Of a stretch of DNA of 47,972 nt, positions 21,571 through 46,253 are shown one piece after another (the first letter of the stretch is position 1; each line of letters begins with the position of its first letter). Below the pieces are notes generated by a model. It saw only the letters and a list, made by a program, of their open reading frames with translations. It was not told where the DNA came from and made no database searches. Source of the DNA: Perkinsus chesapeaki ATCC PRA-425. Its lineage: Eukaryota > Protista > Perkinsozoa. Both the position numbers and the translations under genes were made by a program. The stretch covers positions 1-47,972 of the forward strand of contig JAAPAO010000244.1 of the NCBI GenBank assembly GCA_013115145.1, given 5' to 3'.

Positions 21571-23483
21571 TCACTCAATAATTTCTATTTTTCTCTTTTT
21601 ATTGCAGTTATCACTATCAGTTTCATCGCAGCTTCCACGGGGCTTCAGCCATCTTCGTATACCCTCTGGTTTAGTCTTCTCCTTCCGTGGTTGCTCTATC
21701 TTATCAGCACTTCTCTTCATTGACCGAAAGAACTGAGATATATCCTGATTTCCCTTTGGAGGTCTTCTCCCTTCCATATGAGTTTGTGCTTCTCTCAAAC
21801 GCTCTTTTGCCTTCACATCTGAAAGCGTCATAAACCAGCATACTCTTCAATTACCTACCATCAACGTGTGCTGCCCCAGGACAAGTGATATCTACTTGCA
21901 ATAGAGTTGTCACCGCAACATGGTCGCTGAATAGTGGCGCAGTGTAGACGATACCAGTACGAAAAGGCCGGCTGCAGTATTCGAACTCCCATTCAATTGC
22001 CGCCTTACAATAAACGAGTCGGTGACGCTAGCGGCTCGGTTGGCCTACTCTGCTGTCCATTTCCGGAATGCCTTTGTCCTCACCAAATCGAGGGGCTGGG
22101 ACGTGTTGACCATCAGCAGTCGCACATCGGAGAGCTGCCTTAGCATCACAACCTATAACATTCTAAATAGATGATAAAAGAGGAGCATGTTACCTAACGG
22201 AAGAGGAGCACCAATTATAATAGGCAAACTATCATCAGTAAGGATATAGTCAATACGAGTGCCAGAATTGGTATATCTGAAACCAATAATCAAAGGAGTC
22301 TTTCGATAAACTCTGTACCTTTTATTCCTATATTGATCCCAACATGTGAACCTATCCACAGCACTTGGATGTGCTTCACGAAAGCTATCCTTCATACCAT
22401 CTCCTTTCATGCCCTCGAGCCAATTCTTAATATCATCATTTCCGCGACCCATACCGTATTTGTCCGCAATCGCCCTCTGCTCGACCACAGGCACGTGCAC
22501 ACCCGCGGTTTTGGCAAGTATTTCAAACAACTCATCAACTTCAATAAAGCCGCTTTTTTTAGCTACACTACCATCTTCTAATAAAACAGTATTGAAATTA
22601 AACGAAGTGCGAAGTGATAAAGGTGAATTAGATGCAGCTCCCAAATATACAATCTTGGTGCTCTCCGTGTTTTGTGTTCCCTCATCTGGTGAGTTACCAT
22701 TGAGATCTACCTGCCGTAATATTTACAATAAATAAAGTAGCTACTGCTTACTTTAACACGATACCTATCAGATCCGATCTTAGCAATCTCTCGAGTGCTC
22801 ATAATATTCATTATCCTATTCCACGTAGTGCTTGATAATGCCTTATTTATGACTCCTGTTGGAGGGCTGGCAAGTAAGGTGTTAATATCGATCATGCGGT
22901 ACTCCCAGCAGACATCTCTGGGATCGGGGGACATATTCAAGTCTCCAGCTAGGATAACCTTCCAACCATCTTTTCTTATCTTTCTACAAAGCTTTCTAAG
23001 CTTGCATAAAAACTGCATTTTATAGGGTATCCGTTTGCCACCTTCACCTCCATTGGGCACATAAACATTAACAAGAGCGACATCACCACCATGGAAGGTT
23101 ACCAGACACCGTCCTTCATCATCAAATCTTGCATCATCGAAAGGTTTAGTAAGAACATCGCGGACTAACAAGCCTCGGCGTACTAGAGTGCACACACCAT
23201 TGAATCCTGGCTTGGTAGTTGAATGTGACCAGTATACATCATAACCTTTTGGAATTGCCTCTTCAACAGTTTCAGTACTCGAAGCTCTACTTTTGCTAAC
23301 TTTTGATTCTTGTACGGCAAGGACATCTACATCATGTTTCGTGAGATAGTTGTAAATTGATCCATGGTACTTAATGAGTAGCTTAGCAGTTCTTATCCAA
23401 CCGGCAACATTCCAACTCATCACCTTCAGAGTGTCGTTCGTGTTGTTATCTGCATTCGTGTTGATCGTATCATTTACTTCCAT
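21571..23483 (-). CDS. Exodeoxyribonuclease III / AP endonuclease (EEP superfamily)
   Basis: Motifs SWNVAG, VQESK, GFNGV, DDEGR, VNVYVPNG, GDLN, FTCWDQ, GTRIDYIL and SDH in order; K/R-rich C-terminal tail. Confidence 0.92.
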
Positions 23484-23636: not shown

Positions 23637-25232
23637 CTATGGTGTGTTGCCAATAGTCAAAAGAAGCTTTTCCATAGAGAATACTATTATGATGTGACAT
23701 AAAGAGATGAGAATAAGGTCTAGCAGTCTGTAGATAGGGAACAAAGAGAAGGGAACAACTTGCGTCAGACTCTCTGGGTAGCGCAAGCCCACCACCATGT
23801 CATCACACCATCTTGCAGAGCGAAGAAAAAGAAAATGGATAACGATAAGAAATATACGAATGATAGATAACATATAAGTAGTGCGAACAACGAAGATTGT
23901 TTGAACAATGTTGAACACTTTGAGCACTAATATGTGAAGTAACAATCGCGAAGTCGACACCGCTAGAGTGGTGAGCAAGCCATCGCCGCCCACCAATGCG
24001 TAAGCCAAAATTTGTGGAAAACACATAATGTATGTCATGACATATGAAAAACCATTACTACCCCACAATTGCGGCAACACACGCTATATGGTTCTGACAT
24101 GATCACGGAAGCTTTGAAAATCGCCGTATAGAATTTTAATAGCAGCTAGTAGGGGCTCCCTATCTTTCGGATTGGTACAGTATAGTTTATCAGAACTTAT
24201 TTTATTCATACAATTGATAAATTTGTTAATCTGTGGAACATCAACACAGATGACCTTATAACTAACCATAATAGAATATAGTATGTCTATTAGGCTTACC
24301 AACAAATAGCGTGTATTGTGGTAATAATAAGTGTCAACAACCATCATACAACATAACCAATAACACCATTGAAATAAGGCATATACGAGAATATCGTTTA
24401 CCAAAGGTACAGCCCAGATTTCCAACTTTTCCAGAGAAGGTAGGATGGTGAAAACTGACGAATGTTCCGAACGGCGGCAACCATTCCATGTCCTTGTGGA
24501 AAGGAATAATGCAAGTTCAAATAAGCACCATAGACGCTGATTATAATCCTCGCTCAGACAGAGGACAAAACTGCGGGAGCGAGCAATAGACTGGCCGATC
24601 CTGGCTATCCCGTCGAGTTTGAGGTTGGAGTTGGTCTGATGGATGCAAGCCCAATCTAGGAATACGACAGGGCGACCAAGTAGGGGAAAATGTACGAGAC
24701 AGTAGGAGAAGATAACAGCAATAACAGGGGCGAAAAATAGGCATAGTGCAGGTGACCAGCACGTTACATATTGTAATAGAAGGGAGGATACCAAAGTAAT
24801 AGGCAAAACATATCCCCCATAGAATCTTATAAATATACATAACACTTGCGCCATTTTCTTGGCGTGCCAAGAATGACTGATAAAAAAGTCTATATGACCG
24901 TATGGATTAGAATTCCGATATACCATTTGAGACACCATCACTTCGTCTCCTTGACAGATGGGAAGGAATATCTTTGCCAACTGTCGAACCTCAATACCGC
25001 TAACTTTACCACCAACATAGATGCAACTGCTCTTAGGATGCAAAGGATGACCTGGTCTCCTACAAGGAAACATGTTGCATAATAGAGAATATAGAATCAT
25101 ACGAAAGCACTGAATTAAATGACGAAAATGACAAGGGCCATAATCCATCCTATCTTGACAACGTGTGTTCCTATGACATGCTATCACATGTAGACACTCC
25201 CAATAGTCGTCAAAAAATACATTGAGGCTCAC
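23637..25232 (-). CDS. Transmembrane protein with TIR-like domain; one in-frame TAG at 24084-24086
   Basis: DFFISHSW (aa115-122), VFLDWACIHQ (aa190-199), SRSFVLCLSEDYNQRLWCLFEL (aa219-240); ORFs 24084-25232 and 23637-24080 share one frame; first in-frame ATG at 25148. Confidence 0.75.
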
Positions 25233-25356: not shown

Positions 25357-26205
25357 CTACTGTTGCCCTCTAATAAAACTTCTAAACGATCTTCTATTCC
25401 TGTTCCTCTGTGCCTCACTTATCGGTCTAGGAGTGTCATCATCATATACATAAGGATAACTTGCAGTATCAACCTTAACAGTCTCAAGGCCTTCAGCTTT
25501 ATATAAATACGGGAAGCTACTACCACAAACCACCGCAGAGTGATTAACACTATCAAACATATAAGGGAACCCTCTTATTGCCACTCCCTTAGCATCATTG
25601 TACTTGTTGTAAACGTACGGAAATGAGCTAGCAGTAACCAAACCAACACACGGTGGAGCTGTCATATAGGGGAACGTAGCATCAGATACATTAGCAATAC
25701 TATTATCATGACAATGCATATAAGGGAAGCTCCTATCCGAAGCACACCCTTCCTGGGCAAGTGGCGAGGCCGGAGGTGCAGTGGAAGACAACCCAGCGCC
25801 TTTAGTAGCATCAACTGCTGCAGGGGTGCTGCCCTTGCCTAGTTTAGCTTCTCTGAATGCCTTCAAGCTGACTTTCTCGTATTGATTAGCAATTGGTGGG
25901 GGAGGCAGCATCGCCTTAATAGGAACGTTTTCCTCATCTCCAAATTTACCCTTCTCTCGCGTAACCTCAACCCTCCTAGGTGGCATCGGTGTTATCATTT
26001 CACTAGCTCTTGGGGGAACTGCATTTGGAGATCTATCAAAACAGCCGGAGCAGAAGTTTAGCATTGTCAAGAGGGATAAATAAGCTACACCAAAAATATC
26101 TCCTAGCAGGTAGTCATCATCCACCAATAACAGTCTTTGCCTCGATGACTTTTGCGCTGCGGTGTAGTGACTTTGCGCCCGTCTATTTATACGAAAAGCC
26201 ATACT
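25357..26205 (-). CDS. Hypothetical protein with six (S/T/G)(F/Y)PY repeats
   Basis: 298-aa ORF, ATG at 26205 (MAFRINRR), repeats SFPYM, TFPYM, SFPYV, GFPYM, SFPYL, SYPYV. Confidence 0.75.
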   Translation of the reverse strand, partial: SMAFRINRRAQSHYTAAQKSSRQRLLLVDDDYLLGDIFGVAYLSLLTMLNFCSGCFDRSPNAVPPRASEMITPMPPRRVEVTREKGKFGDEENVPIKAMLPPPPIANQYEKVSLKAFREAKLGKGSTPAAVDATKGAGLSSTAPPASPLAQEGCASDRSFPYMHCHDNSIANVSDATFPYMTAPPCVGLVTASSFPYVYNKYNDAKGVAIRGFPYMFDSVNHSAVVCGSSFPYLYKAEGLETVKVDTASYPYVYDDDTPRPISEAQRNRNRRSFRSFIRGQQ

Positions 26206-26557
26206 AGCGGGAGACACAGTAAAGTAAGAGGGATAGCGGCACGATAACAACAAGTGATATAATATTCAGGAGTGAGAGAAGCACAGATCCACACACTACA
26301 GGCCGCTTGGTGAGGAATGGTAACTACAACAATAAGAATCTTATTAACTGTAATAATTACAACAATCAGAAACGGTATATTCTGTAAGTCTGTGACGCAG
26401 AAATCGCAAAAGAAATACCAACAAATGATGGGGGCGCGTTAGTGTCAGCCGTCAATAGGAGGCAAGTCTTGCGGCTTTTTCAACAATGAGACTTCCGTTT
26501 ATTTTCCCCTTCTGTACACATCCCTACGATAAAACAGAAAACGCATGGCTTCCGAAA

Positions 26558-42899: not shown

Positions 42900-45800
42900 A
42901 TTAACAAGTATCTTATCATCACAATAATTAGAGTTGAGAACGAACGACTTAGAAAAGTTCGATTGAAATTGAAGGAACAGGAAGCAAGTGCAGCGGTGGC
43001 AGCTCCTATTGGTGAAGATATTCCCGAAAAAGAGGAGCAGGAGATGGGTAATGGGGACAAGGAGAACACAAAAGCTATCAAGGTAATAAGCAGGGATCTA
43101 GTTTATGTTCCTTCGCACAAGAAAGATATCTTGCTTCTTCGCACTGGAAAGATATCTTGCTTCTTCGCACTGGAAAGATATCTTGCTTCTTCGCACTGGA
43201 AAGATATCTTGCTTCTTCGGNNNNNNNNNNNNNNNNNNNNNNNNNNNNNNNNNNNNNNNNNNNNNNNNNNNNNNNNNNNNNNNNNNNNNNNNNNNNNNNN
43301 NNNNNNNNNNNNNNNNNNNCACTGGGAAGATATCTTGCTTCTTCGCACTGGGAAGATATCTTGCTTCTTCGCACTGGGAAGATATCTTGCTCCTTCGCAC
43401 TGGGAAGATTTTGTATCCACATCGACAAAACATTGGTGACAACCTATCCTCAACTCATACCAACTTTTGTCAGGAAGATACTCCGGTTAAAAGCGAGGAC
43501 TCGACAAAAGCCAAATCTGACTCATCACAGCAGCAGCAAGAATTGCATAGCGGGCTCCAAGATGACCTTCATACCGCTCCCGCCCGTTTCACGTTTGAAT
43601 TTCGGAAGGCGACCTTCCCAGAGAGAGGCACACGTGGTAGTGTATCGGCATCGATCGAACCCCCTCGACAAGCAGAGTCCAATGAGATTGTTAATCGATT
43701 ACATAAATTGGCGAGTGACGCTACTCATCCTTTGCCATTGGAGCTGCTCAACTCATTACCGATATCATCGCTATCATCTTCTGATCTATCTAGGGTCTTT
43801 TGGTGCGTCGTGAAAACAAATACAAGTCCGCTATGGAAGAAAGGATTTAATGATCTTATTAATGCACTTGATGGGGTAGTGGAGGACCTCTCTTCCAAAG
43901 ACGCTGGTCGGACTCTACTAGGAGCCAGTCAACTGAGGCTACCTATCGGGCCATTGGATACCAACCCTTTAGTTGCCCTCATTGGTGCCTTGCTCTGTCG
44001 AGTAGCATTGGAAGAGTCTATTGGTCATCGTGAGGCATTGACAGGCTCCTCGGCGTGTGTGGCATTATGTGCCGTCAGTAAGCTTATCGCTACTACTTCT
44101 GACCGACCACCATCAACTTGGTTGGACTTGCATGAGACCGTAGAGTCTCTGGCGGGTAGACTCACTGGTGATGGTATACCCTTTCTTAATAGTAAAGAGA
44201 TATGTGTTGCATTATCATCGATGGCGACATCTGGTGTCCTGCATAGGGTGGCAACAGCGACCATGCTGGACCAGCTACTCAGTGATATAAGAGCTCTTCG
44301 ACCAACTCAACTAGTAGGGTTAATGTGGGCTTTATCGAAGATGAACATCACCATCAGTGGTAGTGTTATGATGGAGACCATCTGGCCGGCCATTGGTGAC
44401 TTGTCTAAATTATCATCCCGGGAAGTAGCTTCATTGTTGCACAGTCTTGGTAAATGTATTAAGGACCAGCAGGTTGCCGTAGACCTACGCAAGGAGCTTT
44501 CGAAGCATATAACAGCAACAGAACTCAATGGGAATGAGATATGCGCAGTTATAGAGGGGCTCGGAAAGAGCGAAGTTGATGGTGACCAAGTTGTCGAGGA
44601 GGTCTTGCAAAGACTTAGTGCTATTAAGCAAACACTGTCACCGAGCCAGATAGGTCGGTGCTTGGTTGCTATAAGGAAGCTGCCGAAGCCTTCTTATGAG
44701 GTCCATAGGGAGTTAATGGAGTTGGCTGAGGAACGATTGTACGCCTTCAAACCGCAGCAATATGTAACGCTGTTGAGTGATCGTAATTTAATCGATGTAA
44801 GTAGTATGAGTATCTTTAAGAAGGCCAAAGAGCACGCTTCAAGCTTGTCACTAGGTGATCTTTTGAAACTACTCAGTCTGTCTCCTGGTGACTCTCTGAT
44901 CGAGCGGACTATTGATGATAAGGTTACTGAAGATTACAGATTCAAGCGGCCTAATGGAGCCTCTCTAGCCTCCTCGTATCTCGAGACTTTTGGCCATAAT
45001 AAAGGCCATGTTATACGAAAACAAATACCAGCACTTGTGAAGATGTGCCGAACCTCCAATGAGTTGCATTGGCTTTTGTATGCCATAGGTGTACTTAGTA
45101 ACATAGATACCATGGACCATCTGCACACTCATCGAGGAGCACAGGCGATCGATGCTGTTGTGGTTGATCGTATTGGGGTTGATGAAGATCCTGTGGGCTT
45201 GCTAGAAGCTCTCAGCTTCGTGAAAATGGACCCTACTAGAAGTATATCAGCCTTGATGACTTCATTGAAGAGTGTCTGGGCTGATCTGGAGGCAGCTGAT
45301 CGAGAGAGGGCTCTGGCCGCAGCAGTCGACTTGGGCATCGACACTACTGTTATGTCGATAGAAATGCCGACAACCTTGGCTGGCGTATGGGCCAACATGG
45401 TTATCAAACCAGATGTCTGTGTTGCAAAGTCAGTCCTGAGTTCACTGACCAAGGAGCTGCCATCTCCTCAAGATCGGGACAGACTAGAACAGATATTAAT
45501 TAACACTGGTGGCGCTACTTCCAAAGAGAGAGCCTTCGAAAGTAGGGTTTTCATGGTGATGGCTGACAATCGCCGAAGTTCAGGTAACAAATACAGTCGT
45601 TGGATATCAGATGCATTGTCCTACCTAAGGATACCACATCAGCCAGATTCAGTCCACCTCAATGGCACTTGCGTAAAAGGTATTTCTGTCTCGATGATGA
45701 GAATGTTTATATCTTCAGAGTATCCTTGCAGCTCTACCAACATACGGTATAGGTCTACTATTAGACGACTCCACCTATCCAGGTGGTCGGCCAACTGGTC

Positions 45801-46253
45801 GAAGCTTGATACGAAGAAGGCAGCTAGTTAATCAAGAATCTCAACACAGTATGACGTATCTGCTGACTTTCCTCGTTTTCCTCGATCGAATGAAATCGCT
45901 GTTCCTATGCAGTTTACTATCTCTAATACTACACACTTAAATTCTATATATAGGCTCCCACTCAACTGTCTTACCTCGTTCGCATGTTTAAGGCCATCAC
46001 GCCCATCTGTACAGTTTGACACTGCATTTTGGTAGATACCATAAAACGGTTACTAGTAATACGGAGACTGGATCTAGTAAAGGCTCGACAGAAAAAGGAA
46101 TTAGTGCCTTTTACAGCTCGACTACTTAATGGCCTAATAGTAAGATACGATTATGAGTAGGTGTAATCTGGGTTTAGACCGACTCTACTTTACTGCAGCA
46201 ATACTCAGCAATCGGAGAGGGTCAACCGGAGGAGGTGAGGCAGCCTCGAATTA
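42900..46253 (+). CDS. Helical-repeat (HPR/FASTK-like) protein with C-terminal RAP-like domain; ends approximate
   Basis: Large exon from 43474 with repeats KEICVALSSMAT, PTQLVGLMWALSKM, SREVASLLHSLGK, GNEICAVIEGLGK, PSQIGRCLVAIRKL; downstream exon YGIGLLLDDSTYPGGRPTGRSLIRRRQL. Confidence 0.7.
43111..43409 (+). repeat. 26-bp intronic minisatellite GCACTGG(A/G)AAGATATCTTGCTTCTTC spanning an assembly gap
   Basis: 4 copies before and about 3.5 after the N run; lies in intron 43083-43473. Confidence 0.95.
43221..43319. other. Assembly gap (N run)
   Basis: Run of N bases inside the minisatellite. Confidence 1.

Follow-up and report, generated by a model that had tools for sequence, protein, structure and literature searches.

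A probable interrupted member of a membrane-threaded, TIR-like protein family in Perkinsus chesapeaki

A minus-strand stretch of the genome of the protist Perkinsus chesapeaki ATCC PRA-425, positions 23637-25232 of contig JAAPAO010000244.1 (assembly GCA_013115145.1), is explained best, and with reasonable confidence, as an old and highly diverged paralogue, encoded by a single exon, in a protist family of proteins that pass the membrane eight times. In this family, a predicted TIR domain is split by membrane hairpins, and in this copy the gene is probably broken by an in-frame stop codon. The window, which is the whole stretch of DNA analyzed here, comprises positions 1 to 47,972 of the contig. 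In bacteria, plants and animals alike, immunity and programmed cell death depend heavily on TIR domains and, to our knowledge, the TIR domains described are all compact soluble modules. With a TIR domain threaded through the membrane twice, a family of more than 1000 sequence clusters from alveolates, and probably from haptophytes too, would couple a membrane event to NAD+ chemistry in a novel manner. The family is found in ecologically and economically important protists, such as shellfish parasites, coral symbionts and bloom-forming algae. The NADase activity of the family is putative, and any role in immunity or cell death would be hypothetical. What is new at this locus is probably the broken state of a divergent and unannotated member of the split-TIR family.

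Family membership and the interrupted reading frame

The locus consists of two open stretches divided by an in-frame stop and is not a continuous open reading frame (ORF). Read from the sequence on the minus strand, on which all features of the locus lie, the first stretch runs from 25232 down to 24087 and has 382 open codons. Codon 383 is a TAG (24086-24084), past which the same frame is open for 148 further codons (23640-24083) up to the terminal stop at 23637-23639. The original prediction had described 23637-25232 as one reading frame and overlooked this TAG. The first stretch holds the entire TIR-like domain with membrane helices 1-4, and the second holds the C-terminal membrane helices of the family, transmembrane helices 5-8 (TM5-8), which stand behind the stop. 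The GTG at 25232 is merely the first codon beyond an upstream stop and has no value as evidence of a start. The earliest ATGs are codons 29, 45, 54 and 99 (positions 25148, 25100, 25073 and 24938), and similarity to relatives sets in at about codons 76-100.

Relatives were collected with an exhaustive HMMER search of a library of 15 billion public proteins clustered at 50% identity; the pieces before and after the stop were searched separately. The HMMER search resulted in 1141 cluster representatives at E<=1e-3, including 59 at <=1e-10. The nearest relatives are P. chesapeaki proteins from the same assembly, and the best of these is the hypothetical protein KAF4664189.1 (P0001), with 32% identity and 114.8 bits. 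Other named members come from P. olseni, Breviolum minutum, Symbiodinium sp., Durusdinium trenchii and the MMETSP/EukProt marine transcriptomes, so that the dinoflagellate relatives suspected in the original prediction do exist. Neighbors in the ESM Atlas, at 0.94 in language-model features and a TM score of 0.73-0.76 in shape, are unnamed clusters, the few typed members of which belong to Perkinsozoa and Haptophyta. The family is found in Perkinsus and Symbiodiniaceae and probably also in haptophytes.

A family hidden Markov model (HMM) built without the window scores the locus at 199.9 bits over codons 100-381 (E 3.5e-60), far beyond chance, and the locus copy retains every position that is conserved in at least 90% of the family. 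The profile match and the retained invariant residues place it in the eight-helix split-TIR family of Perkinsus and dinoflagellates, whereas eight helices in one unbroken frame are absent from this copy, in which the TAG precedes helices 5-8. The locus shares its motifs, segment order and hairpins with the relatives KAF4664189.1, KAF4656136.1 and A0A7J6M585, at 26-32% identity. Unlike these, it has a premature stop before TM5-8, is unannotated and has no relative more than 32% identical to it. No protein at least 50% identical to the locus product was found among the 15 billion public proteins, and a word-index protein search with the 382-residue piece gave no match. Since the best match reaches 32% in a library clustered at 50%, neither the locus protein nor a close orthologue is present in this collection. 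The locus itself is unannotated, whereas the neighboring ORF (25357-26253) is on record.

In a tree of 51 proteins, the locus copy is placed among Perkinsus paralogues with a Shimodaira-Hasegawa-like approximate likelihood ratio test support of 90-92, which is not decisive. Its end branch measures 1.87 changes per site, compared to a median of 0.89. The gene of the closest intact paralogue, KAF4664189.1, is a single exon of 1371 nt on JAAPAO010000294.1 (L001:6001-7371). It lies outside any tandem array and is flanked by transporter genes of the EamA/TPT type and the folate-carrier/MFS type.

Homology continues across the TAG. The piece before the stop aligns with KAF4664189.1 up to residue 306 (query codon 379) and the piece past the stop aligns with residues 317-380 (BLASTP, E 2e-5). 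The spacing is 11 residues on both sides, which is exactly collinear. With the same family HMM, the first piece covers model positions 61-332 (199.9 bits) and the second covers positions 340-449 with 8.0 bits. This lower score was reached by none of 200 shuffles of the second piece (maximum 5.1), and it ranks second-best among the 921 six-frame pieces of the window. Because homology runs collinearly across the stop, the TAG, according to the alignment and the predicted structure, stands in place of a sense codon of the relatives, within the helix preceding TM5 (helix 299-317 in KAF4664189.1).

Splicing and codon reassignment were both considered for the TAG and rejected. The candidate GT...AG introns that would remove it are 15, 23, 41 and 49 nt long; the first is too short and the others break the frame. 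An intron is also opposed by the ungapped, collinear alignment with KAF4664189.1 and by the intronless gene of this paralogue. The original remark that introns are not evident is thereby upheld, as no frame-preserving GT...AG intron spans the TAG. A genome-wide use of TAG as a sense codon was rejected because only two sites in the window have open stretches of at least 90 codons around a single stop. The locus is the extreme of the two (389 + 148 codons), and over all frames of the window, TAG and the other stops have similar frequencies. The other site, a TGA at 44309 on the minus strand with open stretches of 128 and 93 codons, lies opposite a 908-codon plus-strand ORF (43105-45831) and is probably an antisense artefact.

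As this very diverged sequence keeps every conserved position, has no frameshift and is still open for 148 codons past the stop, selection must have acted on it during most of its history, and the stop is recent. Most likely, the copy is a pseudogene of recent origin or a null allele that ended up in the assembly, and not a working full-length sensor. A single TAG past the third TIR segment would remove membrane helices 5-8. The membrane-anchored NADase or signaling sensor that the original prediction had proposed is improbable for this copy in its full form, as the full protein cannot be made from the sequence as written and the product is missing from the public proteome.

Several observations weigh against a decayed copy. 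The TAG rests on one DNA run, the only public run in which the locus was found. A Logan contig from this run has the same bases at the TAG, with a word depth of 77 and no variant listed. The assembly itself was probably built from this run, and contigs drop minor alleles, so this agreement adds no independent support for the TAG or for expression. In addition, the lesion is a single one with 148 open codons beyond it, as would also be seen with read-through, a base error or a null allele in a heterozygote. The long end branch alone is no sign of decay, as those of intact Perkinsus relatives are long as well (1.08-1.82).

Two other explanations were considered, in both of which the locus would still be functional. 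If the TAG arose from an error in assembly or base calling, is present in only one of two alleles or is read through, the gene would be intact in the organism and the eight-helix protein would be made. The single lesion, the lack of a frameshift and the open downstream frame that is collinear with the paralogues would all be expected then. This explanation is nevertheless unlikely, as the Logan contig reads the same bases at this depth without a variant (probably from the same data), the window gives no sign of TAG reassignment and annotators called no gene at the locus. Alternatively, the gene may functionally end at the TAG and encode a product of about 330-350 residues with a complete TIR domain and four helices, in which case the downstream ORF is a leftover. 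The three TIR segments and both hairpins are indeed all encoded before the stop, structure prediction folds this part confidently by itself (see below) and all family-conserved residues are intact. On the other hand, full-length relatives carry about 130-170 more residues with four helices, and the 148 codons past the stop are open and homologous, which a long-established truncation would not have kept. With stops making up about 6% of random codons, as estimated from the base composition, so long an open frame would survive with a chance near 1e-4. In addition, no such protein is annotated, and a functional truncation is considered quite unlikely. A recently broken copy is therefore the preferred explanation. 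It implies that the family includes decaying or null copies which are skipped by annotation, that a census of raw ORFs overstates the number of working genes, and that broken copies may show how fast the family turns over.

The predicted TIR fold and its membrane hairpins

The three TIR-type motifs on which the original prediction was based are all present on the minus strand: DFFISHSW at codons 115-122, VFLDWACIHQ at codons 190-199 and FVLCLSEDYNQRLWCLFEL, which includes Glu239, at codons 222-240. A model of codons 98-382 was made with AlphaFold2 (AF2), using the family alignment as input, and has a mean predicted local distance difference test (pLDDT) of 83.5 and a predicted template modelling score (pTM) of 0.81. 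In model residues, its elements follow each other as βA (17-23), two helices (29-59 and 64-83), βB (93-95), αB (105-121), βC (122-129), αC (137-152), βD (163-168), two long helices (170-201 and 207-245), a short strand and two final helices (258-272 and 275-282). The predicted structure is a five-stranded, flavodoxin-like α/β fold of the TIR type (βA-βE).

In a Foldseek search, all top 45 PDB matches are TIR domains, including BcThsB. The E values are weak (1e-2), as expected, because 130 residues of inserts break the alignment. When the Foldseek matches were aligned with VIA-align, the RUN1 TIR domain reached a Z score of 8.8 with a root mean square deviation of 3.2 Å over 130 of 163 residues (model residues 14-285), followed by RPP1 (8.0), SARM1 (7.9) and AbTir (7.7). 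A scan of 48,161 chains that is independent of Foldseek also has TIR domains as its top three: SARM1 (7.6), IL-18Rβ (7.5) and RPP1 (7.3, 132 residues). At the sequence level, a profile of the core segment (98 sequences) was compared with solved structures, and homology to solved TIR domains was found. RPPT-TIR and RPP1 match best, at an E value of about 5e-4 (best 4.6e-4), followed by TLR2, Cat1, RUN1, IL1RAPL1/2, Roq1, L6 and RPS4, and about 30 of the 31 best matches are TIR domains.

Some results argue against a TIR fold. The matches to Pfam are below the gathering thresholds, with 22.6-23.7 bits for TIR_2 (PF13676; cut-off 28) and 17.7-18.4 bits for TIR (PF01582; cut-off 21.3), and they are confined to the βC-αC stretch at codons 209-245. 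The structural Z scores of 7-9 are in the range that VIA-align calls middling, and in the Foldseek-independent scan unrelated helix hairpins reach Z scores of 6-7, matching residues 169-243 only. It could be argued that the domain is not a TIR at all and is instead a generic flavodoxin-like domain, for example one resembling nucleoside 2-deoxyribosyltransferases, that was forced into a TIR-like shape by AlphaFold. Apart from the modest Z scores and the sub-threshold Pfam matches, this is favored by the nucleoside deoxyribosyltransferases themselves, which score 5.4-5.8 in the same scan. Against it, the sequence profiles match TIR families only, and nearly all of the best PDB profile matches are TIRs. 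Among 90 aligned relatives, TIR_2 is matched by 23 and TIR by 17 at E<0.01, and no other family recurs. Also, the automatic annotation of UniProt labels two members 'TIR domain-containing protein', one from P. chesapeaki and one from P. olseni (A0A7J6M585). A generic domain is therefore very improbable. The ranking of the structural matches agrees with the independent sequence profile and with the fact that about 80% of a reference TIR is covered, and the assignment of the TIR fold, as originally proposed, is therefore regarded as highly likely.

The canonical order of elements in a TIR domain is βA-αA-βB-αB-βC-αC-βD-αD-βE-αE. In the predicted fold, two membrane hairpins replace αA and αD, respectively. 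Strand βA and the ensuing loop (DFFISHSW; 24867-24890), in which F117, S119, H120 and W122 are invariant or nearly so in the family, are followed by hairpin 1 (codons 126-180; 24693-24857). By hydropathy, this hairpin consists of helices at about residues 126-156 and 161-180, which correspond to helices 29-59 and 64-83 of the AF2 model. The TIR core segment (codons 181-266; 24435-24692) comprises βB and the BB-loop region (VFLDWACIHQ), αB, βC, αC (WCLFEL) and βD, and carries the sub-threshold Pfam TIR_2 match and the segment profile described above. Hairpin 2 (codons 267-342; 24207-24434) is found by hydropathy and AF2 at the position of αD. The third TIR segment (codons 343-382; 24087-24206) is assigned to the βE/αE region by alignment and AF2 and has conserved D357, R358 and F375.

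The original prediction of a hydrophobic two-helix insert between the first two strands was thus right. Its view of a TIR domain split by one transmembrane hairpin stands as far as the split is concerned; the number of hairpins is two. Of the further C-terminal hydrophobic helices it mentioned, those at 267-298 and 304-342 are present in the open frame, and the several more past residue 383 sit behind the TAG. The fold spans codons 114-382 and is not a contiguous TIR domain of about 120-180 residues. Of 166 proteins retrieved from the family, 110 have all three motifs, and in these the distance between the βA and βB motifs has a median of 82 residues and a minimum of 63. As this long gap holds across the family, the insertion of the hairpin is a family trait.

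Because the number of helices between the segments is even, all three TIR segments would be on one side of the membrane. These segments contain 24 Lys/Arg residues and the two short trans loops (TCWS and VDTYY) contain none, which, with the positive-inside rule, indicates that the TIR side is cytosolic. The AF2 model of KAF4664189.1 (pLDDT 79, pTM 0.79) has the same arrangement and four additional helices, TM5-8, at residues 321-439, where the confidence is lower. No known fold was recognized for the membrane part, for which VIA-align of this model gave generic helix bundles only (Z <=9.3). In the AF2 model, the linkers are about five residues between βA and helix 1 and one or two residues between βD and helix 3. 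With linkers this short, the C-terminal edge of the sheet should face the membrane, judging from the model; in known TIR domains, the active site is at this edge. The three cytosolic segments (βA; βB-αB-βC-αC-βD; βE-αE) would assemble into one TIR domain, which may be held flat on the cytosolic face of the membrane with its helices continuing into the membrane helices.

Conserved residues and putative activity

Conservation was counted after alignment of the 150 best relatives with the family HMM. Trp235 and Asp193 are kept in all 150, Glu239 in 149 (with one gap) and Gln199 in 148. Cys196, Phe191, Phe117, Ser119 and His120 are each kept in 147, followed by Tyr230 (140), Gly208 (137) and Leu234 (136). 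Trp122 is invariant in the alignment of 90 sequences. The mean column identity across the family alignments is 11-14%.

The WCLFE motif at codons 235-239 aligns with WCLDE of RPP1 and RPPT, so that a glutamate of the catalytic type is found at the start of αC with a tryptophan four residues before it. In the profile alignment, the family pattern R-L-W-C-x-F-E-L-A lies over S-S-W-C-L-D-E-L-A of RPP1/RPPT. By counting on this alignment, the aligned glutamate is residue 158 of RPP1, which we take to be the catalytic residue of that protein. The original reading of the WCxxE glutamate (Glu239, codon GAA at 24516-24518) as catalytic-type is borne out by this alignment with the glutamate of a plant TIR NADase and by its near-absolute conservation. 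As near-invariant residues in very diverged sequences resemble an active site, an enzymatic TIR is the most likely reading of the conservation pattern. The TIR domain, held at the membrane, would then most likely cleave NAD+ or a related nucleotide, and the membrane helices could relay a membrane signal to it.

Against an enzymatic role, TLR2, which is known as an adaptor TIR, shares WCxxE in the same alignment, and the glutamate is no proof of catalysis. The TIR domain of the family could also be a non-enzymatic scaffold or adaptor that oligomerizes at the membrane like the TIR domains of Toll-like and IL-1 receptors. The TIR domains of TLR2, TLR1/6 and IL-1RAPL are indeed among the best profile matches and share WCxxE. 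However, the glutamate, the tryptophan four residues before it, the Ser-His pair of the βA loop and the βB aspartate are nearly absolute across more than 1000 diverged clusters, which is the pattern of an active site. Also, the best structural and profile matches are the enzymatically active TIRs RUN1, RPP1, RPPT, SARM1 and AbTir. A scaffold is considered possible but doubtful, and an enzymatic TIR is preferred.

A more far-reaching proposal, which seems rather unlikely at present, is that the family is a TIR enzyme mechanically wired into a helix bundle, a new eukaryotic device for signaling or cell death, of which the broken copy would be a casualty of arms-race turnover. The hairpins that stand in for αA and αD would run straight from βA and βD, and the active-site ends of the strands would be pressed on the membrane. 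A change in the bundle, caused by a ligand, lipid, voltage, or a viral or host factor, could then switch on NAD+ cleavage. Conversely, the eight-helix bundle could be a pore that opens upon assembly of the TIR domain or in response to its products. If true, one polypeptide would do the work of bacterial two-part systems of a TIR and a membrane effector.

Known TIR systems and neighboring genes

The predicted five-stranded fold of the family is similar to that of the TIR domains of plant TNL proteins (RUN1, RPP1 and RPS4) and SARM1 (Z 7.3-8.8), and these share the tryptophan four residues before the glutamate at the βC-αC junction. Another likeness is presumably the VF(L/I)D-type βB of SARM1. 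The TIR domains of plant TNLs and SARM1 are contiguous and soluble, are about 140-170 residues long and are fused to NB-ARC/LRR or ARM/SAM modules. In contrast, the fold of the split-TIR family is twice interrupted by hairpins, and the eight-helix membrane protein that contains it lacks any further known domain. Toll-like and IL-1 receptors also have a cytosolic TIR at the membrane, but their membrane helices are outside the TIR domain.

Membrane-held TIRs have been described in other protists. In Dictyostelium, TirC is a NADase of which a single N-terminal helix restrains the toxicity (PMC13142454). TirC resembles the family in being a membrane-held TIR, whereas its helix is outside the TIR domain (PMC13142454). 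In Gephyrocapsa huxleyi, TIR genes encode several membrane helices followed by a TIR and respond to virus infection (PMC12489294). These are likewise membrane-held, but the helices are N-terminal and are not described inside the fold (PMC12489294). Matches to the TIR fold are also shared with Thoeris ThsB and other prokaryotic TIRs (BcThsB, SPARTA and AbTir). The split-TIR gene differs from Thoeris in being eukaryotic and single-exon, with ordinary flanking genes and no evident partner effector gene. The PADLOC defense models gave no match for the locus copy or the two closest paralogues; one paralogue has a faint match to ThsB (E 0.006). A recent atlas of eukaryotic TIRs contains uncharacterized clades that are found only in eukaryotes and leaves a helix-split architecture unmentioned, and full-text literature searches found no description of a membrane-threaded split TIR.

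Within the window, the family HMM found no second family copy or tandem array among the 921 six-frame pieces. The locus is flanked by two other minus-strand genes. Directly upstream, at 25357-26253, is an ORF of 298 codons with six [FY]PY[MVL] motifs (SFPYM, TFPYM, SFPYV, GFPYM, SFPYL and SYPYV) at a spacing of about 17-20 residues. It has no Pfam match, and its ESM Atlas entry, which starts from residue 18, is a disordered model (pLDDT 0.35) with chance-level look-alikes only. On the other side, at 22153-23483, is an APE1/exonuclease III-like gene (Pfam Exo_endo_phos, E 8e-13), the ATG of which follows the second open stretch of the TIR gene at a distance of only about 150 nt. The coding sequence of this APE1-like gene is divided between two open stretches that differ in frame, from which a short intron near 22645-22706 can be deduced.

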